The notes under the pieces were generated by a model. That model did no database searches, was not told the origin of the DNA, and saw only the letters and a program-made list of their open reading frames with translations. A program made the translations under genes and the position numbers. A DNA stretch of 53,946 bases, the filler included, from Sluysia triapertura (lineage: Eukaryota): assembly GCA_046118255.1 (NCBI GenBank). It is 4 parts of 4 records of this genome, joined end to end, with 100 filler letters (N's around TTAATTAATTAA, not from the genome) between each part and the next. Parts side by side here need not be neighbours in the genome. Positions count along the whole stretch, not along the records: positions 38,447 to 53,946 come from JBJNIA010226572.1; 3 more parts are not named here. One strand, 5' to 3'. This document shows positions 1,100 to 53,946 of this stretch, piece after piece. Numbering within the stretch: position 1 is the stretch's first letter; every line of letters begins with the position of its first letter.

Positions 1100-1740
1100 T
1101 TTATATTCGTACACAATAAAAAATAACAAATGTTGAAAATCGTATATGATCTAAACATCTGCAATTTCACGAGCTTGTAAGAGTTTAACAGTCGTATCAG
1201 AATCTGAAATTTTTTCTTATTCTATAGCCTCGGTAACACCTTATTAATATAGAGAACTATTTGAAAAATTAATGAATTTAATATGTATGCTGGACGAGAA
1301 TGTGTAAATTGAAATAGTGTTTGTCGAAATTCAGAAATATCTGGTGAAAACTTTACTAAATGTAATAATTTAAACATAAAACATTACTTTGTCGCAGATT
1401 TTTCGTCTATGCTATTTTCTTGAAGATTTTCCTAACAAGGCTTCTTAATACGTTTCTTCAAAAGATCTTAAGACTTTTTTAAGTTTGCAATGCATTAGGA
1501 AGCAATAAGTTGCAACAGCTTGATAGTATTAACCTTTCAATTTCCCAGATTCATACACATCTTTGAGTATACTCATAGCTTTTTAAAATATTTAGTCGAT
1601 TTCTTCAAGCATTCTAAAAGTGGACGGATTCGTAGAGAGTAAGTTATTATGATTATTTAAATAACGACTTGATTGCTGGCATTAATCAAGGTCTGTGATG
1701 ATACTACATTACCATTTCTGCTCATTTAATAAGAAGCATA
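1100..1740 (-). pseudogene. Decayed coding-like segment, all-helical (HAT/TPR-like?), unidentified
   Basis: Manual minus-strand translation gives protein-like runs (KAMSILKDVYESGKLKG*YYQAVATYCFLMHCKLKKVLRSFEETY*EALLG...KLLQAREIADV) broken by many stops; GC is higher than in the flanks. Confidence 0.3.
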
Positions 1741-10087: not shown

Positions 10088-10992
10088 CTGTAATTGAAGA
10101 TTTGTCTTAGATCATTTGACAGAATGTTGTATTAATTAAAAGAAATAACGGAAAAATATTAAATACTTTCGATAGCATAATATATAAAGTAAAATTTTAT
10201 TGGAAGTGTTGCATTTTAATCTTCCAATAATAGAAAGACTTTGAGATTGAATAATTATTTAAAAATTATCTAAGAAAATTGTAATTGAATTTAATTTCTC
10301 TATTAATAATAATAATAATTAATATTTAAAATAATTATTTTATTATTATTACTATAATTTTAATATTATCTTTAATATGGCCACTACTATTATCATTAAT
10401 AATTATCATTTTATTATAATCAGTACTATTATTGTAAAAATTTGGTTGTTGCTTATAATTTGTAAATATTTGAATATGCTCAAATGAACTCTAAATAATT
10501 AAACTCTAAAGTTTTGTCTGGGCATTGTAAATCAAGATTTAAGAATTAATATTGTTAATATAAAATTCTTTTACTAATTTATCTGTATATCATATTCACC
10601 TTATCTGGAAGTATGAATTCGATTACTCGTCTCAAATATTCGAGATTGAAGTGCCATTTTAAAAAGAAACTTTCACAAATTTTATTTCTCTTTATTTTAT
10701 TTGAATAACTTATCAATTAATTATACTTTGTTACACCTTTCAAATTTTATGTTACTTTATCTCTCTAAATAAAAAATTCTTATTCTTTGAAGACTTCTTA
10801 ATCTACTAAGACTTTATTTTGTACAATTTTGTTATAAGGTTTATGTTGTTTCGTACAATATTTTAGCTATTCTCTATTTTTCTATTTTCAATTCTTTCCG
10901 TTTAATGAAAAAGAAAATAAATTAAACACGAGATTATTTACTTAATAAAAAAATCACATTATACTTTTATAAATTTGTACAATAAAATTATA

Positions 10993-11015
10993 TACTCCCT
11001 CTGTTCCAAAATATG
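10993..11015 (+). mobile_element. Solo Stowaway/DD39D-type terminal motif
   Basis: TA-CTCCCTCTGTTCCAAAAT matches the CTCCCTCYGTT terminal consensus; no partner end found. Confidence 0.4.
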
Positions 11016-11559
11016 GTATACATTTCTAAAATAGTGTATAATTATGTTTATCTAAAAATGTTGCTTTTTTAAATACATATTTTTCAGGTTTAAATACATT
11101 TAAATTTAAGGTAATTTTAATATCACCCATTATGTCTGAATATGAGAGAGAAATGAATAACGAAACAATTATTCTATCAAGAGTTAGTAAGACAAAGCAT
11201 TCAATTCCACATTTTAGTAAAGAAAAACTTCGTCGTCAAAACAGATTTCCAGTATCCTTTTTGGACAATTAATTTATACAAAATTATATTAATGGCCTTT
11301 AATTTTGTTATGAATTCAACTATTATAAGGTTGAATTACGATTATTATTAAAAATTATGAAATTAAAAGAAGTTAATTCAAAATTGTCTTTCATAAACAA
11401 AAGTAATTGACGAAAAACGGATATAATTCTATTTAAAATAAACAAAAATATCATATTAAACTTTCTAATAAAAGATCGCTTATTGTATTTACGATTTAAA
11501 TTCAGTTGAGGATATGTTACCATTTGTCTAAGATTGAGAATCCTAAAATAAAAATAGAT

Positions 11560-28264: not shown

Positions 28265-30130
28265 AATTGTTGGGATTGTCCAACTATGGACCAGAAGACG
28301 AGTGAAAACAAACAAGATCACAAAATAGAGAAAAATGATACAAGGTAATGGTTGGAACATTATGAATACTGTTGGAATAAGTATAATAAAAATGAAAATA
28401 TCTATAGCAAAGTTGAAATCTGAGGAGTACTTTAGAGGAATTCCTTGAGGAATACCTTAGATTTCCAAATACCATATAAGGTGTTGTGACCTTGGGGAAG
28501 CCGAAACGGACTAGAAAAGCCATTGAAGGCGTTAGAGTACCTTTGAGCTTGTTAACATTAAGATCAGCTGAGACTTTATTAATCTTTAAGTATTTTTGAA
28601 ACCTTGATATGATCTTCGAGTAATATTATAAAGTGCTTAAAATTTTTAAAATGTTTGAGAAATAAAGTCATTGTTCAAAATAATGAAGATAAGTTTAATA
28701 TGGTAATAATTAACATAAAGAATTAGAAAAAGGAATAAGAAATGCGAAGGTGAAAACACTTAGAGCCTCCTGAATGTTTTATAAACTACTACATAGTTTT
28801 AGAACCTTAATAAAACCTTTAAACATAAAATAAGATTAAGTCTAAAAATGATTAATTTAATTAAAATTGTAATTAACTTAATTAAGAAAAAGTACGTTTT
28901 TGTGAATAACTTTTGAATGCGAAATGCTATGTTAAATTTGAAAATGTTTGTCTATTTACTTAGAAAAGACCTTTCGACGAAGGTATGGTTTTACCGACTT
29001 CATACAAGGAAATCCTTAATATTGAGAAAAGTCAAATTTTAATTAATTTTTAATTATGGAATGTTGAATTTTTATACTTAGAGTGATGCAAATGTAATGA
29101 ATGAATATGAGATGATTGCTATGAAAGAGGAGAATCTATAACTGAGTTTAAAATGTTTGTAGAATGGTTTGTTTGAGAATAAGAAGCTTAACTCATTTTT
29201 TTAGAAAATTGGATGTGAAAAATCAAAAATCAATTAAATCCTATAAAGTGAAATTAAATTCATTACTTTTATGTATGTTAATAATATTTTTGATTGTTAT
29301 TTTAATTTGAGAAGTAATTTAAGTAAAAATAGATTGAGTAAAAAATGATGGTTGATAATAAATCAAATTTTTGTGTTTTGTACCTAATGAAGTTTGACAG
29401 AATGTACCATATAATTGTCAAAGTTGTCGGTCTAATTCTCTAAGAAGTTTTGATGATTTGTGTGAGAAAGTGTTTGATTGTGAAACTTAGGATTGATTGG
29501 ATGTTGAAAGAATATAAAATGAAAACTTAAAAATTTTAACACACAAAAAAACACAAGTGCGCAATTAAGTTATATAAGAATTATATATTTTATTTTTGAT
29601 TTCATTATTTTAATAAAGTTATTTTTATTATTATTATTATTATTATTATTTTATTTTATTATTTTTGGGGGAAAATTCATAAAGGTTTAGCTTTGTGGGA
29701 GACACCCTACTCAATTTATGTTAAGAAATTTTAAATATTCTATTTTTTAATTCAGATATTACTGTTAAATTTTAGGGAGGATCCCTGCCCAAATTGTTTT
29801 ATAATATTTAATCTTCATTAAGTTAGGTTAAAAATTACCTTTAAATATTTAAGTATTATAACCATTTGAAATTTTCTAGATATTGATATTTTTATTGTTT
29901 GTTGCGTCACCTCTAGTTTTCTTTTTTTAGATATATTGTTGTGTCCTTCATATTATTATAACAATTATTGTTAATCATGTAATTTCAGTCATTTGTATTA
30001 TTGTTCAACGTAAACTTATAATAGCAATTTGTATTTTGATTTTTGTATTCATTAGATTATTGAGCTTTTACTAATATGATTTAAGAACTTAATCTTTGGA
30101 TTGAATAACTATTACCATCAAAATAAGAAA
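28265..30130 (+). repeat. Long repeat family, copy B
   Basis: Shares GAAGGTATGGTTTTACC, GAATGTTGAATTTT, GAGAAGTAATTTAAGTAAAAATA, TGTACCTAAT.AAGTTTGACA and GTTGCGTCACC with copy C. Confidence 0.85.
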
Positions 30131-30560
30131 ATTTCTGATAATTTTGTATTGAATTAAGTGATTAACGAAATTAATGAGATTTTATTAAGTAAATTATCCG
30201 ATATTGATTTGTTATTATTATTAAGCATAAAGACGCAACAAAATATTATTCTTTTAAATATTTGCGCTTCATTTCTTATAAGTAGGTGGATGAGCAGTAA
30301 ATATTTCATAAGGAAAATAAATAATCCAATTAGAATTTTTATTTATTGATAAAACAAATCCTATTTATTACTAAAATTAATAAAATATACATCCAATATA
30401 CAAAAAAAGTAATAATAATAAATAAATAAATGACCACGGGAATGAGTAACATTTTAAAATTTCTCATTGACGACAGACGTAGTTAAGGAGTTAAAAATAA
30501 TTTAATTTTTATATTTAATTTATTTCATTATTATTTATAAATATACATTTTAAATTTTAG

Positions 30561-31349
30561 AATTTTAAAGAACATTATGCACAAAATTGAATTAATGCTA
30601 CTGATTCATATAAACGTTATAGTTGACTCTAAATTTGATTTGCTGTTTAACACTAACAATACCAGAGTTTTGTGTAAAAAGTTACAAGATATCTGCATTA
30701 CTATGGATTATAGGAAACAAAGCATTTGTAATGATTTACGACCTAAAATAGATTCTATGGTACGCAATTTAACCAGTTACCTTAAAAGTTCAGATGTTGA
30801 AGAAAAAATGTTGAAAATACAGAGACCGACATATGATGATAATCCGAATGTAGAATTATTATCGTTAATGTTGAAAAAATTTTTAGCCAATGAAATTAAC
30901 AAAGAAATTATTGAATGGGACAAAAAAAATAATGAAATTAATAGATTGTGTCATTTTTTGATTGGATTATTTAAGAAACATTTAGATGAAATTCAAGAAG
31001 AAATATCTATACCAAATGATTTGATAAATGAAGAAACATTAATGTTGGCTTGGAATGAAAATGTGCAACGAGAAGCTGGAAATAGTGAAAATTATATTAT
31101 ATCAAAAGTTGAAAAAGTATTTATAGTAGGAACAATGACTCTTTTATTTCCAGTGGTAGCATTTGCAAGTTTGTTGGCAGCACCACTGATAATTTCTAAT
31201 ATATATAACGAAACAAAAATATTTCACATTCAAAATGAAGAATTTGCGAAAGATTCCAAACTATTTTTTGACAATATTATCAAAGATACATTGAAAGAAT
31301 TAAGTGAAGAAGATATTAAAGAAAATTTCTTTAGACACATTTATAAAAA
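30561..31349 (+). CDS. Exon of a dynamin-like (DSTYK-like / bacterial dynamin-like) protein, helical stalk plus hydrophobic hairpin
   Basis: tttag| acceptor and |gtaagt donor; over 260 open codons; LTSYLKS, IIEWD and EKVFIVGTMTLLFPVVAFASLLAAPLII resemble the post-GTPase region of invertebrate DSTYK-like proteins as I recall it. The exon is solid; the family call is tentative. Confidence 0.6.
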
Positions 31350-31397
31350 GTAAGTTTAATGTTTTAATGTATCTTTAAAAATAAAATTGTTTTTCAG

Positions 31398-31552
31398 TTG
31401 TGAAGATCGAGTAAAATCTTTTGATATATTTATTCGTGAAGAATTGAATCTTAAAAAGAAAAGTCTTGATAATACAATTACTGAACAAAAGCAATTACCT
31501 GAAAAACTGAAAGTATTGAATCAATATTTAAATGATTTCGAGAGTATTCATG
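31398..31552 (+). CDS. Next exon of the same gene (coiled coil)
   Basis: 48-nt intron gtaagt...ttttcag; frame continues NCEDRVKSFDIFIREELNLKKKSLD...ESIH; donor gttagt at 31553. Confidence 0.7.
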
Positions 31553-31615
31553 GTTAGTTTAATAAATTAAAAATATGGTGAACAAAAAACTAGAAATAAA
31601 TAGAAATATTTTTAG

Positions 31616-31677
31616 TAATCTTGTTGAAATACTATTTTGATATACGAATTCAGTATCTTTTGAAGAGAGATTATTAA
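31616..31677 (+). CDS. Probable terminal exon of the same gene
   Basis: 63-nt intron ending tttttag; frame gives VILLKYYFDIRIQYLLKRDY*. Confidence 0.45.
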
Positions 31678-31689
31678 TTATTAAATATT

Positions 31690-33200
31690 ATTGTTTGGAT
31701 CACTCAACTGTTGAGTATGAAGATGCAGGAAGAATTGTTAGAGTAATTTTGACAATTGAAGAATACCTTGGACTTCCAAAGACCCTTGAGATTAGCTTGA
31801 AAAAATGTTTCGAAGCAATAAAGTACCCTTAAACTGGTGAACCTTGAAACCATTTAATATCTCATCAACCCTTAAGAATCTTTGAGTAACCTTGTAGAGT
31901 TTTTAAAATATTTATGAAATAAAGTTATTGTTAACAATATTAAAGATAAATTTGTTACATTAATAGTTAGAATAGATAAGTATAAAAGGAACAAAAACTT
32001 TAGAACCTTAATATAGCCTTTAAACATAAAATAAGATCAAGTCTAAAATAGGTTAATTAATTAAAACTTTAATTAACTTAATAAAAATTAGGTTTTATAA
32101 AAACGCTTGAACGAGGAATGTCATATCTAAGTTGAAACTCTGCATGTATTTGTTTTAATAAGATATTTGAATGAAGGTATGGTTTTACCAAGTTCATGCA
32201 AGGAAAGCCTTCATAATGAATAAAGTCAAATTAATTAATTCTCAATTATAGAATGTTGAATTTTCATATTTTGAGTGATGAAAAGATAATGAATTGAATA
32301 TGTGGTTATGGTATGAAAGATAAGAATCTAGAAATTAATCTGAAATGTTTATAGAATGATATCTTTGAGAATAAGAACCTTAGACCTTTTCAATTAGAAA
32401 ATTCGATGTGAAAAATAAACATTAATTGAATTCTAAAAACTAAAATTAAATTCATTATTTTTATGTGTGCTGACAATGTTAATGATTGTTATTTAAATGT
32501 GAGAAGTAATTTAAGTAAAAATAAATCGAAGAAAATAATGGCTAATCATTAATAAGTATTTTGTAATCTGTACCTAATAAAGTTTGACAAAACATAATAC
32601 GTAATTGTCAAAGCGATTATTGTCGGTCTAAACTTTTTATTATAAAACTCAAGGGTGATTGGAAAGCTTAAGAGGGAATAGTTCTAAAAAAATTTTTTAG
32701 AGATAAAATTGTAAATATTGTAATGTCTGGATAATATTGTGAGTTTTTATTATTATTTTATTGATTTATTTTTCAAATAATATTTTCCTTAATATATTTT
32801 AGGTATTTTGGGGAAAATCCACATTCAATCAATTTTTAAAATAATATTTTGCTGTAAATATTTTATTGAAAGTAGCTAAATATTTTGAGAAAAATCCCTT
32901 TTAAGTTTTATTTTAATTGAATTGAATTTTTATTAAATTTAGGTAAACCCCTTTTTAATTTTTTATATGGCATTTATTTCTAAATTTTTAGTTGCGTCAC
33001 CCTTGGTTTATCGTGCTGTCAGTATTATACAAAAGTTGATTGTTAATTATTTAATATTGATTTATATCATTATCAGTGTGTAGTGGTTTTATTTATTTTG
33101 AATATTGGACTTTTATTAGCGATAAAACTAATAATTGTGAGATTAGTTAGATTCATTTGTCGTAATTGTTTGATTACGATATTTGCATCACATCAAATAT
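31690..33200 (+). repeat. Long repeat family, copy C
   Basis: Direct, diverged copy of 28265-30130; boundaries are approximate. Confidence 0.8.
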
Positions 33201-33599
33201 TACTTAGGTTGAGTTTTTCAATTTAAAGTTAATGCAACAATAAAATAAATTAAAGTGAATATTATAATTTAAATTCAACTGCGAAATATAATATTCATGA
33301 AGAAAACCCTAAGCCTAACACATTTATTAAAAATCAACAACACAAGAACTCACACTTAAACATATTTTCACAATAATAATTGTAATGGTTACTTTACTTA
33401 ACCTAACATTTACACACATCTACATTCTAAAATTTAACATTGTTATTAAAATTATTCTTATCTTATTGTATTACTCTATTATTGATATTTTTTCATTCCT
33501 TTTTCTCCTGTTGTTATTTTGTTACACTCTTGCTTCTCCATTATTTTATTCTTATTCCTTTTGTTGAGTCCCACTTGTAGCATCACTCAATTTCTAAGA

Positions 33600-38446: not shown

Positions 38447-38499
38447 ACAATTTATTCAAATTATTATTTCAATGTTTCAAAAATTGATAAATATCTAAA

Positions 38500-38980
38500 T
38501 AGAGCGAATGATGCAGTGAAAACTTTTAATATTCAAGATCTCAATCCAGACAATATGTGCATGAAAGAATTGAATTTGATAACCGATTCTGATAATGCAC
38601 TCAATAAATTTGATATTGAAGATTATGTGCTTTCCGATCATGTTACGATTCGAACTTCTACGAATATAAATATTACTAATAGCTATGCGCAAACTGCTAA
38701 AGAAATAAATGATTCAAAATTTTCTATTATCGATGAGAATAAAAGATAATCCATCATCCTTTGCTTACAGTGGTGAATTTTATGTTTGTTTTGAAAAGTT
38801 TCCTAAATACGCGACAACCACATATTTAGTGCGTGAATTCGAGTTCCTCAATTTACTGTTCGTGATGTATGGACACCGTGGTCATTATACAGACAACCTT
38901 GTTTTATTACAATTAAAGTATCGTCAAGTTTCAACTTTGCTAAATATCTCAGTAAGCCTCATTTTTATCAATTATTTTTA
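38500..38980 (+). mobile_element. Degenerate LINE fragment (AP-endonuclease motifs with an internal deletion)
   Basis: LNPDNMCMKE..L...FDIEDY resembles the APE PDIxxxxET...IxxY region and is followed directly by SDHVTI (SDH motif). Confidence 0.45.
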
Positions 38981-39363
38981 GTTCTTAATAAAAATTTTAT
39001 ATTCGTCGTTTCGGTTGTACGATATTACAGTGTAAATAAATTGTTTTTGTCGTTATGTCGATTACTTATTTTATTTCGCAGTTCGCATGAAATATTATGT
39101 TGTAGAGTATGGCAGCAAAATTTGTTTTGGATATAACTTAAAGATTTATATTATACTGTGTACTAACATCTTAAGTCTGATTAAACGTATGTTTGAAAAA
39201 CCTAGATACAATACTCTATAATTACTAAGCTTTTTCTTTTTCTGTAACTATTTTTGTGGAAAATATAAGCATAAAAGATTCTTTATCATCTCAATCAAAT
39301 GTGTGTAGATATTGAAAATTGTACTATTTTTAGAATATGATTCAATAAAATTAGCAAACTAAC

Positions 39364-39643
39364 CCAGATCAAAACTCCCAGTCAACTCCAAATTATTCCC
39401 ATTTTGATTGCCTCCTCCTCCTGACCCTAAACCACCAGTACTATGATAACCTTGGCAACTAAAAGTATCATTACAACAAACACTAGTAATATTGCCATTT
39501 CGAATTTTGTTTCGTCTTTTCTGTTCTACTCTATCTGATTCTTGATTTACTGCATCAAATACTGTCTCCGTTATTTCCAACTGCCATCTCTCAGACACTG
39601 TGGTTGGGAAATCTTTGTATTGTGCCTGATCTTCTTCTGTTAA
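39364..39643 (-). CDS. GRK2: GRK2/3-type kinase exon (RH C-terminal helices and linker); PH-domain exons not found in this contig
   Basis: ttacag|LTEEDQAQYKDFPTTVSERWQLEITETVFDAVNQESDRVEQKRRNK matches GRK2 [30 protein letters not shown]; probable phase 1 donor G|gttagt at 39363. Confidence 0.9.
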
Positions 39644-40696
39644 CTGTAAATAAACAAATTCCATTGTTATTCATTTTTTTGTTAAATTTAATCAAAATAA
39701 TCACTGCTTACTAAACAACTATTTCATTAACATGAATAAATTTTCTCTGTTTTCTTGTAATTGTCATTATTATTACTTATTTTATATAATTATACTATAT
39801 TAATATTAAATTATATTCGATTTGTTTCAATATTCAATATTTAAAATGGCGCCTTATACGAAGCAAACTGTATTCATTATGAAAATATATGGCTATTGGA
39901 TGTTTGTGGTAGAGGTTTTACAAATAATATCTATTTAGCTTATACTTCACGCTATGAGTCATTGAATAAAAAATTAAAATTAAAAATAAATCAAAATTAT
40001 AAAATAATATCGATTGGACCATTAATTTATAAAATCAAAAAATTATCCTTGAAAAATTATTTTTTCAACACATTTTCGAAATCACGAAAGTTTGAGAATC
40101 ACTGATTGAATGACCGAAAAAATTTGAAGTTAGTCACAAGCTAATTCTCGATGAAGATCAATACTATATAATTATCAATATCGTTAGTTATTGATGAGTT
40201 AGTAGTAAGTATTTTCTAATTATTTTCTTAATGTTACAAAATGGTACAATTGAAGATGTTAGAAATTATTTAATGAAAATATTACTTATTTTGACATATT
40301 TATCAGAAATTGATATATTAAATTATCACTTATTTCGGTCATTCTCATCTTATAGATTATATCGTATCATATCATACTTTGATTAATGATGGTTTGTTAC
40401 AAAACACACACACAGAATACTAGTAAATGATAGTTGGAAATGATACATAATCCATTAAAATAATTCGTAAATCTTGTATTACTGGAAGATAAAAATTGGT
40501 CAAATTATATTAAGAATGCTTGTCGAAAATAGATGAATTTCAATCAAACATGACAAGAAACAAACAAATACTATTCGATGGATGAATACTTTCTCGTCAT
40601 TTTAAGTTACATACCCAATTCATGTAGCTTACAAAAAACAAAGTGGTTATTATTCAAAATACTATTTGTATTAAATTACACAAAAGATGAATATAT

Positions 40697-41427
40697 AGTA
40701 CTACTCTTACTACTACTACTACTACTACTAATGCTACTGCTGCTGCTACTAGTACTTCTAGTACTACTATTACTACTACTGCTACGATTAATACAGTGGT
40801 GGCCAAATTATTAGATTAAAGACAATTTTTGTGATACAATTCAACATTTTTCAAGGATACTACGAAAATATTAATCAGGGTGAAACTCCTCATTAGGTCT
40901 CCTTAAGAAGATGGTTGAAAGGACAACTAGTCACTAAAACACATTTGACTATAGTCAACCTCAGTTAAATGTTAGTGTTGCTTAGCCCATGCCAACCTAA
41001 GGTTTCTTCTAAGTCGTCTCGCTCGCAAACCATTGTCTATAAGTCTCCTTCTGGCTGTTCTGTTACTAATGTGAATTCCGCAAGTCACTAACTACTTCTG
41101 CAAAGTCACTTTGGTAGCTTTACGATTTATCGTAGAAAGTTCCAACAAATATCTATATTTTCTCAGGATTTATAACATAGTTATATTATATATCGCATTT
41201 AGTATATTATACATAATATTTCGTATCTTACACATTCAATAATGAGCAAATATTAAGAAAAACATTTTTCCTGTTTTAGTCTTATAATTTGGCCACCACT
41301 GTACTACTACTACTACTGCTACTACTACTACCACTTCTACTACTACTATTACTACTACTAATATTACTACTACTATTATTATTATTATTACTACTACTTC
41401 TACTACTAATAACAATAATAATACTAC
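40697..41427. repeat. (CTA/TTA)n microsatellite split by a Tc1 insertion
   Basis: CTA-rich runs at about 40697-40785 and 41302-41427. Confidence 0.9.
40794..41301 (-). mobile_element. Tc1-family internally deleted element (508 nt)
   Basis: TA|CAGTGGTGGCCAAATTAT...ATAATTTGGCCACCACTG|TA (18-nt perfect TIR, extending with mismatches); remnant GIHISNRTARRRLIDNGLRARR..RLAWAKQH..T..D..Q.CFSD..RRPNEEF. Confidence 0.93.
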
Positions 41428-41590
41428 TTTAATTCCTTTCGTATCTTCTTCATCAAAAGATCCAATGTCAAAAGCATCAGCGGCATTCACTTCTCCTCGA
41501 GGTGGAACTAAAGGAGGCATATATTTTTGTTGATAAACTTGTAACCAATCAATTCCTTTGAAAAACGGATGTGATTTGATCTCAGCGGCT
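41428..41590 (-). CDS. GRK2: GRK2/3-type kinase exon (AGC C-tail)
   Basis: ttttag|A GCC..., phase 2; [54 protein letters not shown]|gtagta. Confidence 0.96.
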
Positions 41591-42047
41591 CTAAAACAAT
41601 TTGTAATAGTTTATTTAGTATCACGTTTTAAATAAAACAGATATTAAATAAGACATTTTACTATTAATTTTGTAAGGTAGCTAAGGTATCTAGAGAAATA
41701 TCATGAAAAAGAATTAAAATATGATGTCAGCATTTTCTTGCAATTAAAAAAGTTAATTAATTAAAAATAAATAATTGATAGGAATAATCTTAAATAAACA
41801 GGAAGCACCTAAATATAAGAAAACAAATTATGAAACAAATATAAAAAATTGAAAACTGAATAGGAAGTGCATTAAGTCCAATTAAAAATAAAAAAGTATT
41901 TTTTATTTTATTGAAAACGGATGTCAAGAAAAGAGTATATAAAGAGAACTCAATGACATAAATTCGCACAAGAGAAAAGAAAAACCTTTGCAGATTAACT
42001 TAAATTGTAAAAGTTTATAAAGCAAATTTGTGGATAGTCGGATTATT

Positions 42048-43231
42048 AGTTATTACATCAAGCAGTCAACGAAGAGAAATACATTCAAAGTATTTTATTG
42101 GGTTCTACAGACTTCGAAGAGTATTCATGAAGACATCTATCGGATCTACATATTTTGTTCAGAGAATTCGTAAGTTTATGTTTGATAAGTTTGCTCTATC
42201 TTAGGGTAGAGATAATTTTCCACTTAAATTAAAGTAATTGCACAACTAGTTTTCCACTAGTCATAATCTACAAATTAAACTTGGTTGTTCAAGCAATAAT
42301 TAATTATTTATTGTATAACGAATAGTAAAGGTATTTAAAACACATTTTAAAAATTACCTTTAGAAGCTTTCGCGTATCCTTTAACAAATATTAAAAGAAA
42401 TCCTACAGGGGTGCCTACCACAAAGTTATAAGACATCAATTCCAGGCGAATCTGGCTTCACTTAATGAGTTCATTAAATGTCTTTATACTGTGCACAATG
42501 CACTCAAATGGTGTACTAAATGTAAAATAAAGTTACAAGACTACATCTGTGAACGACATCTTTTCAAAATACTTCATAACGTTGAGTCTATATATTTTCC
42601 CCACTGATTCAGAACTCATTAATAGTGAAATTGAAAAGCAAAAGTCGCATTAACATTTTCTTTTTGTATTCTTGTGTATAATTTTATTGTTATTTAAGTA
42701 TTTTATAACTGGTATTAATATTTAATGAAAAATTTATTTGTGGCTCTTGAAAAAATTTAATATAATCATAAAAACCTAGAATGTTATGCAGAATATAAAA
42801 GAGAAAAGGAGACAAAAAACAGCTAGATCAACTCATACCGAAACATCCAATATAATAAATGATATGTGAAGCGTAAATGTCTTTAACTTTAAGTATCTAT
42901 ACGTAATGAACGGGTTCCTAAACATATCGAATGTATAACATAACACAAAGATTTTTATTGTACTATCAAAAGATGGCTATTGTGACCGGACGACATCAGA
43001 ACAAAGAGTCATTGAGATCAATAATGAGACTTTGTTAATTGATACATGAATACGTGGTATATCCATTACGGACTTCAAATTGAAATACGACTCATACCAA
43101 GTTTTCAATTCGATGTTACGAAAGAAACATTTTGTGTGATTATGCACAATATTAAAATAAATAAACTAATAAATTGTATCATGAACTCAAATACTTTCAA
43201 GAAAATCATAAAATTTGAAATCGTAGAATAA
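42048..43231 (+). pseudogene. Decayed coding fragments inside a GRK intron; the 3' part is weakly small-GTPase-like
   Basis: Exon-like pieces with ag/gtaagt ends and internal stops; EQRVIEINNETLLIDT* and FDVTKETF recall Ras/Rab strands, but no P-loop was seen. Confidence 0.25.
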
Positions 43232-46200
43232 GTACTTCAACATAGAAAAAAATAAAATAAAAGTAGAATAATAAGAATGAAGAACGGAACCAAGCACACT
43301 TAATTAGCTAGAAGAGACAATTATGTAAAATATGTAATACTGGTATAATAGAAATGAAGAACAAGCATTATCACATTCACAAATTCATACAAATTCGCAA
43401 AACGGATATAAATAAATTATATGGCCAAAGTTATAATATAGATTGAAGAATTGGCCATAAAATATGTAAAATAAGATTATGTATACATGTATTTAAAAAC
43501 GGCTCTATAGTGATGAAGTTAACTCAGAGAAAATGGATTATAGAAAAATTATTATCCACATTAATGTCATTGAAAAATAGTCAGAAGTTAACGCACTTTT
43601 TCCACGCGATTTTATTGGAGTTTTTGGAGAATTAATTACTGAGGATTATTAATATTATTAATATAATATTAATAATCATAGATAATAAACTAGATAAAAT
43701 AATAAATTAAATTAATCTTAAAATGTCGTTTTTATGATTGCAAATTGAATTTAATTCTACGATATTTTGGAAATAGATACTAAATTGATTACTAAATGGA
43801 GACTGAAAAATTTTAAAACCTCTCATCTCCATCTCTAATAACAGAGTCGAGTTAAAAAATTCACGATATAAAAGATAATGATAATTTGGATTAAGAATTA
43901 AAAATTATTCGATATCATTGGAGAAGCTTAGATTGTTAAAGTCTGAATAAAATGGTAATAATAATAATAATCTAATAAAATATTCACAAATTAAATGATG
44001 ATAAAAAAATCGATTAAAAAATTGTCTAAAGCCATTTTTAGGTTACTATTTTTATTTTTGATGAAAAATAATCATTTCATGTCTACAAATGCAATACTAA
44101 AAGATATTAACAATTTTATGAACATATATTTTGGAAAATGTTTCACTGATAAAGAAACTGTTGTCCATCATTATCATAATGATAATGATTCAAATCATGT
44201 CCAACAGTTCGTTTTAGAATTGCTCCTAACTTTTCATTAATAAAAAGTGACGTAAATTGTAGTACCAAAAAAGTTCATTAAATAAATATATTTAAGACAA
44301 ACAACCAACCCATTAATTTAAATTTAGCGTGTGCATTATTTGTTTAGATACTTTTAACATCAGAAGTTTTGCTGTTTTATTTTTACTTGAGAACGGTTAT
44401 ACAGATGTGATTATTTATTGCATTATGGATTATGTATTTAATTTAGCGCATCCAACTGGATGTATTAAATTTTTGGAAACATTACAGTTAGTCCATTTTT
44501 TATATCGATGTGTTCATTGTTTTAAAGATTTTAATAAGTTTTATTACGTACTCATAGTTAATACAATAATTGTTAAACTTATTTGTAAAGAATAAAATAG
44601 TCCTTAAGACTGAAATTTGTAAACATTTTGTATTTTTAAAACAATTTAATGAAAAATTAAATGAAATTATAATAATTAATTAATAATTAAATTTTAAATG
44701 CCTATAATTCAATTTAATGGTTTTAATGTCTTACCTATGCTTTACATTAATGTAACATCCAGTACGTATTTCGACAACATCTTGAACTATTTCAATTTTA
44801 AGACCAATAATTCAAGCATCTCTCACACTTACAACACAAAATACAACTACTACTTTACTCACCTCATTAATAAAACAACTGCAAGTTTGCTACACAGTAA
44901 AGGGCACGTTCTCATTTATTTTTTCTCCGAATTTTGGTGTACGCATAATCACTTGGTGTTATTGCATTTAAATAAAGATTTCAACATGACGTTTTTTAAA
45001 CAATCTTTAGACAAATACAAATATTGGCCTTTGAACCTTAAGTTAATAAGATCATGTTCGATATACTTTTACAACACATATTTAAATATAAAACCATTCA
45101 TAGTAAATAAAATAACTTATAATAAATTCATAAAACCAACATCATCACTTTCTTTAACACCAAAGTAACTTAATACAAAGCGAACATAAACATACAAACA
45201 TAGAACAATAATTGGGGGTTGCACTATATGGGATGAATAAGAATTATTGATTATTGACAAACAAATTGGAAAATAAATATTAAAGTTGCATTATTCTAAT
45301 TTCAATAAAGCAACCAGTTGAGTTTTTTGGATTTATGAATAATTATTTAGGTTTGCTAACAAAATAATTTAATCTTCACAGTAAATTATATATGAAAAGA
45401 AACTTTCAGAATTTGATAAAAATAAAAACAACCACCTCATTCTAAATACGGATTTGTAAATATGTGCAAACAAGTGAAGAATAATCAATAAATTAAATTT
45501 AAGACTAACTCTGGATGTTAGATTTGTAAATGATCAGCAAAACTGAAAATTACAAGTACTTTTGGTCACCTACCTCACAACCAGTATCGATAGATGACAC
45601 TGATTGACATTTCAAAAATTGCTTGTCAACATTTGTTTTTAACTTACTTTACTAGAACATGCAAAATCATCTTGCAAGGAAACAATATGTACACTGTTAT
45701 CATCAAGAACAAAATATCAGATACAATTACTTTTACTTATCAGTATAGTAAGTTTCTGTAGGAAACATTTTTATAGGTGTAATAAATAAGTAATTAATAT
45801 GTTTTTAGAAACTTATTTGTCTACAAAATTGTGATTGTCGTCTGCTTCTCAATTCAACTTTTGCTTTTCGTTTCACCTTTAAAATGTCTGTTATTTCCTT
45901 AAGTCTCATCTTTGGATATTGTTTTTAATATTTTGTGTGTAATTGAAAAATCGAATTAGTTTTCTAAATTCTTTTGTTTTTTAACAACAGTTTGTTAAAA
46001 GTAGATACATTCATAATAGTAATAAAAGTAATAACAATAATAATAATAGAAATAGAATAATAATAATTAAACAATAGATTTACAATTTAAGTTGAGATGG
46101 TTGAAGGTGTGAAGATAGTGTAAGAGAAATTGTTAAATTGTGAGAGCACATGAATATGTGTAAATGCAAGAATGAGTAAAATAGATAAATAGTTTGTTCG

Positions 46201-46744
46201 CATTTGAGAGGTGACAGTTTTGGGTCAATATTCATTTAATTAATTAATTATATATAAATTGTAAATAAGCACCCAAACAAGGGTGAGAACATTTATAAGT
46301 ATTCCTGTTTGACAGTTATTTCTCCATTTCACCAATCCACACAAACGTTCAATATTCTAAATTCTATTGACAGAGCGTCTTCAAGCTCTGTGGCTTTATA
46401 AACTGTCCAATGTCAGAGTGAATAATAGAACACAAGAACTTGTGTGTGTCTGTAAATTTTTTATTGATAATTGGATATGCATCTTTATTAATAATATAAA
46501 TTGTCCTAAAGAATTTTGAATAATTTAGAATTACTTAAGAGTATATATAACCAACCCCAAAATTGATTTAGTTGGTTTTTCTATACTCATATTATAAAGT
46601 CTTTCTTGTTTAAGAAAGGATCTATTATAAAATAATAAATTAAACTAGAGTAAATCATACTAACAACCTTACATAAGTGAAAACATTAAATAATATAATC
46701 ACGCACTTACATAGTAGGATTGAGCCTTCATAAATAGTTAGTAG

Positions 46745-46824
46745 TTGACCTCCGTTAATTATCTTACTAAAAAATCCGACGATCTAGTCGTAACCCGTAA
46801 GCCTACATACGTCGGCGGGACGCA
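46745..46824 (-). repeat. Dispersed hairpin-forming repeat, copy 4
   Basis: Reverse complement TGCGTCCCGCCGACG..TAGGCTTAC..GACTAG.TCGTCGGATTTTTTAG..GGAGGTC. Confidence 0.7.
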
Positions 46825-47572
46825 TAAGCGTAGTTTTATTCTGTTAAGATTAAATTTTCTTTCAAAAACCACCAACACATAGATAAACTAACACATTAGA
46901 GAATCGAAATACTTTCCAAGAATTCAAATGATTCTTATTTTCAATTTATGTCTTTGTTAACTGGTCTACTAACACGTATGATTTACAATCGATTTTCAAG
47001 TTTTAGTTACTTCCAGATTAACTCAACAAAATAAGCATTTCAAAATCGATGTCTCTTGCGATAAAAGTAAAGATGTTTCCAATATCAATTCCTATGTGCT
47101 AATGTCAAAAACATAACCAAAACACAATAATTTTATAAAAGATATAAAGTAATTAATTATTGGGTTATGTGCATTGAGAGTATGTTGTCAAAAACATAAT
47201 TTAACTAATAGAATAATTTCCTATACTCATCTAGTAACAACCGTACTCGAGTCAAGTTTTGACTCGACTCAATACTCGAGTCCATCAAGTCAATACGTAC
47301 AGTTTTTATCCTAGACACAGTAAAAGTCACAGAAACACATTTTCATAAGTATTTGAATGTAGAGTTTTAAAATCTAATTTAAATATAAATATCGTACTTC
47401 TATCTCTAGCAACAGAAACAAGTTCAGAACTAAACTCGAAGATAGTTAAACATTTACAATAGCTTGACTATTACAATAATTTCATTTAAATACAACATCA
47501 CAAACAAGTAAAAGGTAAATTTCAAACATTTAATTAATTAAGCAGAAATACTAAAATAAGAATGTAGCATAC

Positions 47573-47673
47573 CCAATTCCTTTACATCCCAATCTGGCAC
47601 TGACACTTCTTTGTAATAAACCTTCTAGTAAAGATCTGACTTCAAGACTCATTGTATCTGGTAAATCTACGTT
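47573..47673 (-). CDS. GRK2: GRK2/3-type kinase exon (subdomains X-XI; not in ORF track)
   Basis: tttcag|[34 protein letters not shown]|gtatgc; phases 0/2 match the neighbouring exons. Confidence 0.95.
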
Positions 47674-47737
47674 CTGAAAGTTAATTTAATGCTATAAAAT
47701 TATAAAACAACAACATATTATTATTTATTATCTAGTA

Positions 47738-48040
47738 CAGGGGTGGCCTAGCTTCTTGATAGTCCGAGTTATTTTTCAAAATTTGAAATTTTTCGCGAGC
47801 CACAATTAAATATGTATTAAAAAGTATGAAAAAGAGGTATTAAAAAATCTTTTTTCGATGAGTCATATGAAATTTGTTACCACGTTGCACTTAGTCTTTC
47901 GTACTTGTTGTCAGTAATTTTGAAACACATACGGAACGACAATTTTTTAAAATATAATAATAAAAAAATGAAAAGGGAACTCGGTACATTTATCGAGAAC
48001 TACAAATAATCCTTCACAGATCCACAGGTGGCCACCCCTG
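47738..48040. mobile_element. hAT-type (Charlie-like) MITE, 303 nt
   Basis: Perfect 11-nt TIR CAGGGGTGGCC...GGCCACCCCTG; no 8-nt TSD visible. Confidence 0.7.
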
Positions 48041-48123
48041 GTGCTTTCATTTATTATATATAATAATTGAATATTAATAAATGATAAGATTCATTTATCT
48101 TCAAATGAAAACCAAACAATAAC

Positions 48124-48393
48124 CATTGTTAATGTCATCTTATCAATTTCGTTTTTATCTTTCGTCATTTGACGCCGAAATGGTGAATGACCGCGCAGTA
48201 ATTTATATAACATGCAACCCAAAGAAAACCAATCAGCACTTGAGTCATAAGATTGACCTTTTTGAAGAACTTCCGGTGCAATGTAACCATGTGTACCAAC
48301 ACTAGCAAAAGGTCGTTTGATACTGAAATCACAAGCTAAACCCAAATCACTGATTCTCACATGTCCATTTTCATCCAATAAAATATTAGCTGG
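48124..48393 (-). CDS. GRK2: GRK2/3-type kinase exon (subdomains VIb-IX)
   Basis: tttag|[46 protein letters not shown]...[20 protein letters not shown]...DKMTLTM|gt; the DLG motif is typical of GRKs. Confidence 0.97.
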
Positions 48394-48771
48394 CTAAATA
48401 TAATTTTAATTAAATATAATTATCAATATATAATCAACACATACAAAGAATAGTTTATTATGTTGGATTATTAAGTTAATAAAAAAGTAGAAAACAATGG
48501 TAATAAATGAATCAAAATAATACTAAAATTTATAAAGGCACACGAATAGATCTATAAATGAAATTAAAACAAAGCGATTAAACAGAACTTAAGTTTCTTA
48601 ACAAATTTCAGACCAGATCTTATAGAAAGCTGGCTAACAAACTACTATGTTCACAATCACTTTTCGAAATTCTAAAATACCGAACCTTTTTTGTATTATT
48701 TTTACCATCGAGCAAATTTTCTTTTCGATTATTATTCGTTGGTGTGGTTTTTTACAATTATGAAAAATTCA

Positions 48772-49469
48772 TACTGATCACGAATAAAAACCGTGCAAAA
48801 AATTCCTGATAACAAAATGAATTTTTATTTATTAGAAAAAACTAATATCACGGTCTCAATCGGTGAGATATTCTCATCCACAATCGATCATTTCCTTCCA
48901 CCGTTCTGGCAGTTTGTCAATGACACGTTTGAAGAAGCTTGGTGATTTTGGTCGACAAATTGTTATTGCTTCTTCGTTTTAAAATGTGAGACCAGAAAGA
49001 TGGTTCGACATGGAGCAGAAAAGATGAAAATCTGTTGGGGCTAAGTCAGGCGAATACGGGGGATGCAAGCTTTTGAACTTTTCCAATTTTCTTGAGATGT
49101 CGAGAAATAGTGTTGTGATCACAATCCGTGGATCGTCATGAATCAATTGGTTCAAACAGTCTTCATCAAAGTCACTAGGTCGGCATCGTTTAAATTTTCT
49201 ACTGTTAAATTTCGAAAACTACTTTTGTGCTGTTCATTCACTGACTACCTTTTCTCCATAAAGGCAACGTTTAAATGTTGATTAAAATAGAAAAGGAACA
49301 GATGCCTGACACTCCATTTTAATGATGGTAATGAAAGTGAAAGTTAGTCTAAATTGAGTGAAATAGATAATTCAGCTGAATGAATATAACTCAAATAATT
49401 TTAAACAAGAAGTTGGTGTGTTTTCTTTGCAACAAATAAAACCGCACGAATTTATGCACCAAACCAATA
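48772..49469 (-). mobile_element. Mariner (cecropia-like) internally deleted element
   Basis: TIR TA|TTGGTTTGGTGCATAAATTCGTGCGGTTTT; remnants YGEKVVSE..RPSDFDEDCLNQLIHDDPR and HPPYSPDLAPTDFHLF...IDKLPERWKEMI. Confidence 0.93.
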
Positions 49470-52165
49470 TTTTAAATTATTCACAAATTTATCACAACAA
49501 ATAAATAAATAAGAAAATATTTATAAAATATTTATCAAAGAATCTAATAACAATATGCCTATCTGGTGGTATTCCCTAGAAAGATAAACTTTTTACGCAA
49601 AATAAAAGGATAAAAAATAGAAAAACAGTTAAATGATACAAAAAGACTGTTTTTCTATATTCTGGATCTTTCTTTAAAAGATACGAAATTTGGTAAATAT
49701 TTCACTTATGGACTTCAAGAAATAACTAATTAGAAATGCTTGGCTGACAAACAGAAATATTGAGAAGAGCACCGCCTTCTGAAAACCAGTGTAGGTTGTT
49801 TTTCTAGCCTTACCAAAAACTCTCAAAATGTTTGTATGGTATGAAAAGTAAAAAAAGAAGACTAGATGTATCTGTGTAATGAGTGTAATGTTGAGTTATG
49901 TTTGCCAGACTACATATATTTATATTGCATTTCCCACACTTTTTGATATCTTGCAAAAAATTGATTTTTAGAAAAATCCCGCTCCGTAAGATGTAAGACT
50001 TAAGTTAACGTATGTCAATAATTAATAATAGAACGTTGAATATAATTAAAGAATTATCAAAAAATATATACCTGATTCAAATATTAAACAACAATACTGA
50101 AATATGTACAATAAAAATATTTCGAAAATTTGACGAGTGAGACTCGTCATCGATATGAATAACCAAAGTTACAGTGCGCATGCGTCAAGTGATGCCTGCT
50201 AACAATTAACGAGCGAAAATAAATACCTTCAATATGTTAAAAAAGTTCAAATAAATTAGAACTTAAGGGCTTAATAATTAAATAATTTGATAAATAGTAA
50301 ATAAATGATACTTTATTAATAATATAATACATGATTGCAAGATAGTTACTAGGATCAAAATCTAAGTTACTTATCAAAGATAAATTATACAGGTTGCAAC
50401 TGTATTTGTAGGTAGAGGCGCAATGGTTGGAAGTGCAATTGATAAATTTAAAATATTCTACCACTGGTTAGAAGGCATTATTAGGATTCTCCTACGGATA
50501 CTTCGTTAGTTATTTATTATACAATAAATTAAATAATTAAAATGAATAAATAAAGTAAATAAATAATAAATGAATTTTATTGGTTAGAAATTAAAAGCCA
50601 ATTAAAAGCTAGTTTTTTGGAATTCTGAAATATTTATTCTTTAATAAATTTAAATAAAACTGTCAATCTGGTTGTGCATTCTCGACAAACTTAATCTGTG
50701 GTGACCAACTCAACAATTTGAAATTTTGTTCAAATAAAACACAGCCAAAAATCTCATAATTCTTAATACTTCTACACATAAATTTACAATACACTACATT
50801 CACATTCAATAATGAAAATCATCAAAGATTAACTTTTAAAATTAATTCTTGTCACTACAAACTTAATTCATAATACTTCACACAAAATCACATTCCATAA
50901 GATTCTAACTACCTTCCATTAAAACCTTTCCACATGTTATCTCTTCAGATCCACTAGAACCATTCTCATTTTAGTACATGTTCAATTACAAATTTATTAC
51001 ACCAAAATCACTTCTACATTCAAAACCATCATTACACATTAAATTTTATTCAATACATTTTCAATACATTTTTCAATATCCAAACTCAGAAACATTGCAG
51101 CATATCTAAAGATTTTTTAAAATATTCATCCTTTCTTTTATAACATTGGAATCGTAATTGCACCCTGAAAATTTTATTTAAAAAGTTAAAGCTTAGTTTA
51201 AAAAACATCATGGCTTCATAATCTTTCAACATCAGCCTTTAAGACTCCTAAAGATATTTATGATAATTAAAGAAATTATATGTTCAGAAACAAAGATGAA
51301 ATAAAAGAAAGTTTATGTTTAGAATAAAGGATTTATGTTTTTGAATCATTTTATTGTTATTATTATTATTATTTTATTTTCTTCTTATTTGATTTTGATT
51401 ATTTTCACCATTATTATTATTTGATGTTATTAATTTTATAAACATTTTTAATTTCATTGTAACTACCAACAATTGACAGTTTTAATCAAATATTACTGTA
51501 TCTACCCAATTTACTGTCAATTGTTGAGAATTTGCTTACAGACACATTGTTGAGCTTTTCAATTGATTTTAGTGCTGATAGTTAAATATCTAAAATTTAC
51601 TTATTAGGAACATACACTCACCAATTCGTTGTGTGCACTTGATGATCTATAATGTAATTTTATTCGTCCTCCAATCAACATAAAATTACTAAGTAAAACC
51701 ATATAATGTTATTATTGGTGTACGGTGGTTTGCACAGATATACAAGATTGTACTATCGACATATGCATCATAGTCATATCGATTAACTGAAAATAGACAA
51801 CATACATCACAAAGATTGATAGTAGTGTTGTATACACGATGTAGCAATTGTGTTTCGTAAAGGTTTTTGATGTGATATGATAATTTGTTTAAGCACGGAA
51901 ATTTCATAGGTGATATCAGTTAATAAATAAAAGAAAGATAAAAAATTTTCACAAATAATACCGTTAAAGATAAAAGAAATTAACAATTATTAATAGAGTT
52001 ACAAAAAACAAATTGAGAATAGTCATTTAAAAATTTAGAGCACTGATAAAAATTAATACCTCAATTCAATAATGTTAACAATTGTACCTAACATATCTAA
52101 ACTTTTAGATCATGTTTCAAAATTAAAATATTCAAAGCCAGGTTATGTACATCAACATGCTATGC

Positions 52166-52210
52166 CAGCGATGGCGAACCTTTTTGAGAAGTGGGTCAAA
52201 TTTTGTTTAC
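52166..52210 (+). mobile_element. Solo hAT-like terminus
   Basis: CAGCGATGGCGAACCTTTTT resembles hAT-Charlie MITE ends; no partner end seen. Confidence 0.35.
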
Positions 52211-53060
52211 TAATTGTTAGACTAGCTCGTGGATCATTAAGTGTTTAAATATACATTATTTAATGAGAAATCTGTTGTTTATTTTGAAATAATTTTTTTT
52301 TAATATCAGGTTCATATTTCGTATTTATTAGTTGACGCATTTGGCAGTTAATTCTATTTGTTTGAAAAAATATTTTTTTTTAATAATAAAATATTATATT
52401 AAATAATATCCCGAAACGCGTATTTCAACATTAATGCTGCTTCAAAATAAATTTCACATATTACTAATTTTGAGCTATTTTTATATAGTCATTTGATTCA
52501 TTAGAATTTTTCATGGTAACATCATTAGTAGAGACACTGGCCATCAAATTTGAATTGCATTTATCTTTATAATACATTATTAATCCTTTTATATCATCCG
52601 TTGTAGCTTCAATAGCACTTAGAGTTCAACTTATCATTTTTTTTGTCACTTAAAAATAATATTAAAATAATAATAATTACAAATATTAATAATAAAGTAC
52701 GTTATTTGTTATAATAAAATTTTAATTATGTTTGTGTATAATCAAATAAAATTTCAAAAAAAAAATCAACATAATTTAGGAAATGTAAATACCAAAAGCA
52801 ATAAACAAAAAAATTAATATCATTTATTATTTATTATTATTATTAATGTACAATATAATCAAATCAAATTGATTGCAATGAAAATGATAAAAAATTCAAT
52901 TTAAAAAACAATTATTCTAAAAATAATTGCTGATGTTCAATTTTTGAAATAATAGATAATTATTCAAATTTAAGTAATAAATACTATATAAATAATATTT
53001 AATTATTGGTAAGGTTCATTTATTTTGAATTTTAGGAAAATTTATTTAGATTTATTTAAG

Positions 53061-53239
53061 CACATTCTACACAATTTGAAGATATGGGAAAACAAATTGT
53101 TGAATCAAAAGCAGCAATTGACCAAATAAAATCGGACCTAATGGAGAGATCGGAAAGATGGAAAAGAATAGAAAAATTGACCGGTTTTAATTTAATTCCA
53201 ACTCCTGGCTTACAGAAATTATTAACCGAATTTAACATT
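53061..53239 (+). CDS. STIM SOAR/CAD C-terminal half (N-terminal segment of a chimeric ORF)
   Basis: (A)HSTQFEDMGKQIVESKAAIDQIKSDLMERSERWKRIEKLTGFNLIPTPGLQKLLTEFNI aligns without gaps to human STIM1 [60 protein letters not shown] (recalled sequence). Confidence 0.85.
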
Positions 53240-53946
53240 CATTATTCTGATGTTTCTAAGCATAGACAATCATCAATTGGTGTGCGCTTCTTTTTTAGTA
53301 ATAGTATTCCGCAAGGGTTTGTTATAAACAAATTGCTCGGTTTTGTGGAAGAATTAATCATTATGAACGATCCGGAACACGAATGGAGAGAAAAATTACG
53401 AACTTCTAGAGCGACAAATGAATCTAGACAACGATTGTTCAGTAAATTAACAGGTGAATTGCAGAGAAAAATTGGTGTTAAGGTTCTCGAAGAAGGTGGA
53501 AATTGTGTTATTGGCCTGCAGGTGTGTTTCGATTTGGAAGGAGAAACGGGTGTTGTTATTCGTGGAATTGGAACAGCCGTAGAATTGAAAGAAATCGAAA
53601 CATCAGCTACAGAATCTATTAGTCTTTCACAGCCACCAGCTAGTAAAATTGAATTTTCTCAGTCATTGAATATATCAACAACTGAATCCAAAGAAACCGA
53701 TTTATATCGTTCAAAAACTCAAGTTATTCCGAAAATTATCAAAAACAAAAACGTTGATTTAGGTGAATTGCCATTGTTGACAATATCACAAGTACCTTCT
53801 GGTTTTATTCAGCATCTGGGTAGCATTGTTTCAGTAAAGTCAGTGAAATTACTTGAAAGAACCCATTCTGAAGATCGTGAATGTCGAGATGCATGGTGGT
53901 TAGAATTGCGGCGAGAAATGGCTGCACATACTCGTAGTATTGGTTG
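53240..53946 (+). CDS. C2CD5: C2CD5/CDP138 (KIAA0528) homolog, post-C2 region; same reading frame, runs off the window
   Basis: RQSSIGVRFF, GFVEEL...DPEHEW..K.RT.RATNESRQ, GELQRKIG.KVLE.GGN.VIG...CFDLEGETGVVIRGIGTA, SVKLL, RDAWWLELRREM..H..SIG; no stop from 53060 to the window end. Confidence 0.93.

Follow-up and report, generated by a model that had tools for sequence, protein, structure and literature searches.

An intron-free frame joining a STIM coiled-coil helix to C2CD5 in Sluysia triapertura: a possible RNA-mediated chimeric copy

C2CD5 (CDP138) is a trafficking protein built of a C2 domain, which binds Ca2+/lipid, and of YbjQ_2, YbjQ_3 and C2CD5_C. In STIM proteins, the SOAR/CAD region is composed of the coiled coils CC2 and CC3, arranged as helices Sα1–Sα4; contact with Orai and its gating depend on CC2 and on the F394 apex in Sα2, and CC3 forms a resting clamp with CC1α1 and drives oligomerization (PMC7795233). 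Intron-less, 5′-truncated copies, as well as chimeras created by template switching, are known products of LINE and LTR elements and hallmarks of retrocopies (PMC5470649, PMC2104539).

In the genome of Sluysia triapertura, which is AT-rich (GC 27%) and has introns of several kb, the end of a SOAR-coding sequence was found joined to C2CD5. Such a GC content and intron length fit a free-living flatworm, for instance a planarian, or else a monogenean. The window, that is, the whole stretch of DNA analyzed, comprises 53,946 nucleotides, and the frame lies at the end of its last piece (38447–53946, 15.5 kb). The explanation preferred here, to which we give an even chance, is that the frame represents a real, lineage-specific chimeric coding segment that was made through an RNA intermediate and inserted in an intron of a GRK gene. 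The features of the frame, all on the plus strand, are as follows.

53057–53059, plus strand: in-frame TAA, directly 5′ of the first STIM-like codon
53059–53060, plus strand: AG, a weak (AAG) candidate splice acceptor or the 5′ edge of an inserted copy
53060–53197, plus strand: STIM-derived segment, residues 1–46 (Pfam SOAR, 3TEQ match, AlphaFold helix)
53084–53086, plus strand: earliest in-frame ATG, at residue 9, flanked by G at −3 and +4
53198–53239, plus strand: tail after SOAR, residues 47–60, presumably STIM-like
53240–53266, plus strand: junction and linker, where C2CD5 homology starts, HYSDVSKHRQSS
53267–53587, plus strand: complete YbjQ_2 domain of C2CD5, residues 70–176 (Pfam)
53588–53764, plus strand: variable coding linker, with PPASKI in common with Paragonimus C2CD5
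53765–53946, plus strand: second conserved block of C2CD5 (ELPLLTISQ ... RDAWWLELRRE), truncated where the piece ends

Composition of the open frame

The initial annotation had reported a stop-free frame from 53060 to the end of the window, and this was confirmed: the frame runs for 295 codons to the piece edge, the second-longest open run in any of the six frames of the piece being 156 codons. If no upstream exon is spliced on, the ATG at 53084 is likely to be the start codon.

Codons 1–60 had been expected to match SOAR, and a profile match was indeed obtained on residues 1–45 (Pfam SOAR, PF16533; profile positions 57–101 of 101; E 2.3e-10), with a score of 40.8 bits against a curated cut-off of 25. 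In a phmmer search of PDB chains, residues 1–46 aligned with residues 54–99 of the 3TEQ chain without gaps (E 1.6e-4); they correspond to human STIM1 397–442, the first residue being the equivalent of A397. Identities amount to 18 of 46 with the 3TEQ construct and to 17 of 46 with wild-type STIM1, because the T at position 437 was engineered in 3TEQ and the wild-type residue is C437 (PMC7795233). The gap-free alignment with STIM1, which had been proposed for all 60 codons, thus stands for residues 1–46, where the equivalents of R426, R429 and W430 are kept together with those of I433, L436, G438 and F439. Residues 47–60 (PG..L...NI) presumably resemble STIM as well, as aligned in the initial annotation.

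The part of SOAR present in the frame is Sα3–Sα4 (CC3) only, that is, the C-terminal 45 of the 101 profile positions. The gap-free 3TEQ alignment includes a CC3 helix with the conserved clamp and dimer residues, and a complete SOAR/CAD (CC2 and CC3, about 100 residues) was not found, CC2 and F394 being absent. The name SOAR/CAD given to this segment was therefore too wide. Because CC2 and F394 are missing, the STIM-derived helix would not be able to gate Orai by itself, and the earlier suggestion that store-operated entry is coupled to exocytosis through this protein becomes speculation for the same reason.

From codon 61 onward the frame had been expected to encode C2CD5, which is borne out by the second conserved block and by a match of Pfam YbjQ_2 (PF23025) to residues 70–176 (profile 2–101 of 103, E 1e-37). 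In the YbjQ_2 core, 27 columns reach at least 90% conservation among 110 relatives, and the frame retains 25 of them, a proportion within the normal range (median 0.96). No C2 domain (PF00168) was matched by Pfam in the frame, nor was a C2 exon detected in the 15.5-kb piece by tblastn of eight C2CD5 homologs. Relatives with an intact N-terminus begin to match at about residue 130–150, after their C2 domain, and some other relatives are truncated gene models. The frame ends with the piece at 53946, and the C-terminal two thirds of C2CD5 (YbjQ_3 and C2CD5_C) lie beyond it. Among the matches listed, the best full-length ones are trematode C2CD5 proteins (Fasciola, Trichobilharzia and Calicophoron), with 50–54% identity. 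Maximum-likelihood analysis placed it as the sister of trematodes plus Taenia (a tapeworm), with Macrostomum outside and a support of 96/94. Because it nests in flatworms as sister to Neodermata, the C2CD5 part is native to a flatworm lineage.

An AlphaFold model of the frame, built with 29 aligned sequences, contains a single long confident helix at residues 3–41 (block pLDDT 78–94) and a short helix of low confidence at residues 49–57. Residues 43–47 and 59–71 have pLDDT values below 50, the junction (59–71) being predicted as disordered, and residues 76–178 form a confident YbjQ-like α/β domain (block pLDDT 76–94 over YbjQ_2, residues 70–176). According to this model, the STIM-derived helix would sit on a flexible linker ahead of an intact C2CD5 body.

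GC contents at codon positions 1, 2 and 3 are 0.44, 0.37 and 0.23 in the STIM part, 0.47, 0.39 and 0.24 in the C2CD5 part, and 0.45, 0.38 and 0.23 in the kinase exon of a GRK gene on the opposite strand; since the same pattern is found in both halves and in the GRK exon, both halves look like native coding sequence. The 1 kb 5′ of the frame has a GC content of 20%, and a step from 0.20 to 0.35 occurs at the frame start. Rfam, tandem-repeat and repeat scans gave no match relevant to the chimeric frame.

These properties bear on the possibility that the junction does not exist in the animal and arose in the assembly or the library, either by the linking of two unrelated coding sequences or from a chimeric cDNA. 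Such an artefact is improbable. It would account for the finding that no independent sequence with the junction occurs in any collection searched (exact look-ups with two complete ORFs of the window also matched nothing on record), and an intron-free coding stretch in genomic DNA could stem from cDNA contamination. However, the piece contains no N, the junction sequence is unique and not of low complexity, both parts share strand, frame and codon-position composition, and on its 5′ side the frame passes without a break into ordinary intron-like, AT-rich DNA in which a native GRK gene is located.

The junction and the absence of introns

The STIM and C2CD5 parts are joined on the same strand and in one frame without an intron. 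The onset of C2CD5 homology was placed at 53240–53249 (residues 61–62) by tblastn of eight C2CD5 homologs and by phmmer, in which the alignments start at residue 60–63 in nearly all of the best 150 of 876 matches; this agrees with the earlier statement that the frame turns into C2CD5 at about 53240 with no intron between. The break had also been placed at the end of the C2 domain, and the homology does start two residues before the final strand of C2 ends: HYSDVSKHRQSS matches the last two residues of this strand and the linker that follows C2. The junction lies in the linkers of both parents, with the SOAR end complete on one side and YbjQ_2 complete on the other.

In a full HMMER search of 1.84 billion sequences, the best 150 of 876 matches were all C2CD5, and residues 1–52 were not meaningfully covered; a word-indexed protein search with the whole frame matched only proteins that combine C2 and YbjQ_2. 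No SOAR piece was found when residues 1–61 were compared by phmmer with 158 C2CD5 relatives (best E 1.7). Protein look-ups with short queries (residues 1–62, and residues 1–130 across the junction) gave no match and, being length-filtered, carry little weight. The literature search likewise yielded no STIM–C2CD5 fusion, in keeping with the initial annotation, which knew of none.

The frame contains no intron in 886 nt, and the stretch that corresponds to its residues 62–295 contains at least seven introns in Trichobilharzia and two in Macrostomum, the comparison being with orthologs in other species and not with the parent gene in the same genome. A phase-0 intron directly before the [D/E]xPF motif is common to Macrostomum and Trichobilharzia, whose lineages bracket the position of the chimeric C2CD5 part in the tree, and is absent here, where GGT and GAA are contiguous; this shared intron sits just before the first residue of the second conserved block (53765). 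The genome is not generally intron-poor, as the GRK2-like gene consists of many exons, whose acceptors are TAG or CAG. Judged against orthologs, the frame lacks the introns of its source gene, as a processed copy does. In both Trichobilharzia and Macrostomum, moreover, a single exon runs from the last part of C2 into YbjQ_2. The breakpoint accordingly falls inside an ancestral exon and does not represent exon shuffling through introns; together with the missing introns, it points to an RNA-mediated copy. A reservation applies to the introns, because introns are also lost from functional genes and Macrostomum is without most of the trematode introns.

The same comparison bears on a further reading, in which the C2CD5 part belongs to an ordinary C2CD5 gene whose far-upstream C2 exons are spliced to an acceptor at 53214–53215 (cttacag, followed by AAA; phase 0), the STIM-like 155 nt being an alternative 5′ extension or an intron that is not normally translated. 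The acceptor is a good phase-0 YAG, and three phmmer alignments begin at residue 53, the first codon past it. Nevertheless, neither Trichobilharzia nor Macrostomum has an intron at this place, the C2 end and YbjQ_2 being on one exon; residues 53–60 can be aligned with the last C2 strand only with gaps; the 155 nt, with their coding-type composition and significant SOAR match, are unlike an intron; and no C2 exon was detected over the 14.6 kb that precede the frame. This reading is therefore very improbable.

Several observations on gene structure were made in passing. The phase-0 intron that lies exactly before [D/E]xPF[LV]T in both the Macrostomum contig (6120–6830) and Trichobilharzia (29920–33500) may serve as an ancestral marker of flatworm C2CD5 structure. 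In Trichobilharzia szidati, C2CD5 residues 150–172 match twice (contig 2320–2610 and 10891–11049), at 81% as a read-through after the C2 exon and at 98% in the next exon 8 kb away, and may represent a duplicated or alternative exon. In a Logan contig, an 889-residue ORF without a Pfam match (1400–4069) lies between two YbjQ_2-coding parts of C2CD5 and is probably a mobile element in an intron. On the STIM side, a conserved intron was considered on the basis of a supposed vertebrate exon boundary before AHS and was rejected, since the position of the STIM2β insert contradicts it. That insert lies after STIM1 G379 (PMC6274866).

The upstream DNA and the GRK2-like gene

The DNA upstream of the frame contains exons of a kinase gene in the opposite orientation.

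48094–48393, minus strand: GRK2-like kinase-domain exon (Pfam Pkinase, E 9e-25; splice sites)
47554–47685, minus strand: GRK2-like exon (splice sites)
41239–41610, minus strand: GRK2-like exon (splice sites)
39362–39670, minus strand: GRK2-like exon (splice sites)

We take this gene, of at least four exons, to be GRK2-like, an assignment made by eye; by the same judgment, the kinase exon is very similar (roughly 85%) to human GRK2. Neither an RGS nor a kinase match was found in the minus-strand open pieces from 48.4 to 53.9 kb, in which GRK 5′ exons were sought. Because these 5′ exons were not encountered up to 53946, the chimeric frame appears to be nested, in antisense orientation, within an intron of the GRK gene that measures 5.5 kb or more. 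Such nesting makes it less likely that a long multi-exon STIM or C2CD5 gene reaches in from upstream.

Two kinds of repetitive sequence were noted in this region. An open piece on the minus strand (48982–49218) has the look of a mariner-type transposase (PPYSPDLAPTDFHLF), without a Pfam match, and probably derives from a Tc1/mariner element that has decayed within the GRK intron. (TAC)n microsatellites are present at 40699–40785 (29 units) and 41302–41408 (36 units), and the latter directly adjoins the GRK exon that ends near 41410.

Alternatively, the frame could be one of the internal exons of a fusion gene with many exons. Those encoding EF-SAM, TM, CC1 and CC2 of STIM would then lie upstream beyond the piece and be spliced to 53059–53060, yielding a STIM anchored in the ER that has the body of C2CD5 in place of its C-terminal tail. 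This possibility is unlikely, despite several features that agree with it: the first STIM-like codon coincides exactly with an AG, before which lie a T-rich tract and a stop codon in frame; the step in GC content coincides with the frame start; and each parent is cut cleanly at a domain boundary. Against it, the open pieces of the plus strand in the 14.6 kb upstream gave no Pfam match to SAM, SOAR, C2 or STIM; pieces of at least 28 amino acids were scanned at 48.5–53.1 kb and of at least 35 amino acids at 38.4–48.4 kb, and shorter exons would escape. Within the pieces so scanned, no luminal EF-SAM, TM helix or CC1 was found, and a search for motifs of the N-terminal SOAR half, which provides a lead only, found none upstream. 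The upstream stretch is instead occupied by the antisense GRK gene. The sole acceptor that keeps the first STIM codon is the weak AAG at 53059–53060, as opposed to the TAG and CAG acceptors of the GRK gene in the piece, and the architecture is absent from the best 150 cluster representatives of the 1.84 billion sequences searched. Two TAG acceptors, at 53034–53035 and 53048–53049, were also considered and rejected, as both read into the in-frame TAA at 53057–53059.

Possible origin and comparison with known systems

Under the preferred explanation, a chimeric copy made through RNA, the most economical origin is that C2CD5 mRNA would have been reverse-transcribed from its 3′ end, and the cDNA would have been truncated at its 5′ side two residues before the end of C2. 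The copy may then have switched template to a STIM mRNA, or may have landed in STIM-derived sequence; the STIM part so joined would be the 3′ end of SOAR, that is, the CC3 helix and about 15 further residues. The chimeric copy would have been inserted antisense into the intron of the GRK2-like gene. The sequence itself shows the two homologies, their in-frame junction, the native codon composition, and the lack of introns and of any C2 or upstream STIM exon in the piece; that the copy passed through RNA and is nested in the GRK gene is what we infer. The 3′ end of the C2CD5 copy, where a poly(A) remnant or a target-site duplication would lie, is beyond the piece, and so are the parent loci.

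Translation, if it occurs, might most simply start from the ATG at residue 9 or follow spliced-leader trans-splicing at the AG at 53059–53060, a process known from flatworms (PMC12582326, PMC8629364). The resulting C2CD5 would lack C2 and would carry the CC3 helix of STIM on a flexible linker at its N-terminus. Docking of this helix onto STIM, perhaps by pairing with CC1 or CC3 of STIM, is conceivable, because CC3 clamps CC1 and drives STIM oligomerization.

Whether such a copy is functional can be weighed in both directions. The in-frame join in the linkers of both parents, the complete SOAR end and the complete YbjQ_2 fit a selected fusion better than a truncation at random. Lack of function is favored by the base rate at which retrocopies are dead and by the choice of this case for its neat look. 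The earlier argument that the neat breakpoint implies function or a recent origin is accordingly sustained in part: the in-frame join at domain boundaries is real, but the missing introns and the breakpoint inside an ancestral exon point to an RNA-mediated copy, whose function would be putative. Between the two forms that the copy may take, a young non-functional retropseudogene is somewhat favored over an expressed chimeric retrogene. There is only a slight chance that the frame is a translated gene maintained by selection in a planarian-like lineage, possibly its sole C2CD5, in which CC3 replaces C2 and the protein is recruited by activated STIM, or modulates it, at ER–plasma-membrane junctions; recruitment would in that case take place via activated STIM instead of by direct Ca2+ binding.

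If the frame is expressed, it would amount to an experiment of nature, with one coiled-coil helix of STIM occupying the place of the Ca2+ sensor in a membrane-trafficking protein, and it would offer a handle on what CC3 can do alone. It would also add a fresh case in which chimeric retroposition gave rise to a new flatworm gene. As a young retropseudogene or an assembly join, on the other hand, the frame would be an ordinary by-product of a repeat-rich genome, and the one lesson would be that chance can produce in-frame chimeras whose domain boundaries are neat.

The frame resembles SOAR/CAD of STIM1 in that the heptad hydrophobic residues are kept and one long helix is predicted, as in Sα4/CC3, and differs from it in lacking CC2 (Sα1) and the F394-bearing apex of Sα2; no EF-SAM, TM or CC1 was found in the upstream pieces scanned. 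With C2CD5/CDP138 it shares the complete YbjQ_2, the linker and the next conserved block, and it falls inside flatworm C2CD5 phylogenetically; unlike C2CD5/CDP138, it has no C2 domain and no introns where relatives have from two to at least seven. The frame also resembles chimeric retrocopies and retrogenes, such as template-switch chimeras, TRIM5-CypA and jingwei, in which an intron-less, 5′-truncated copy is joined in the same orientation to part of another gene. The in-frame junction at two domain boundaries, however, is neater than what typical retropseudogenes show.
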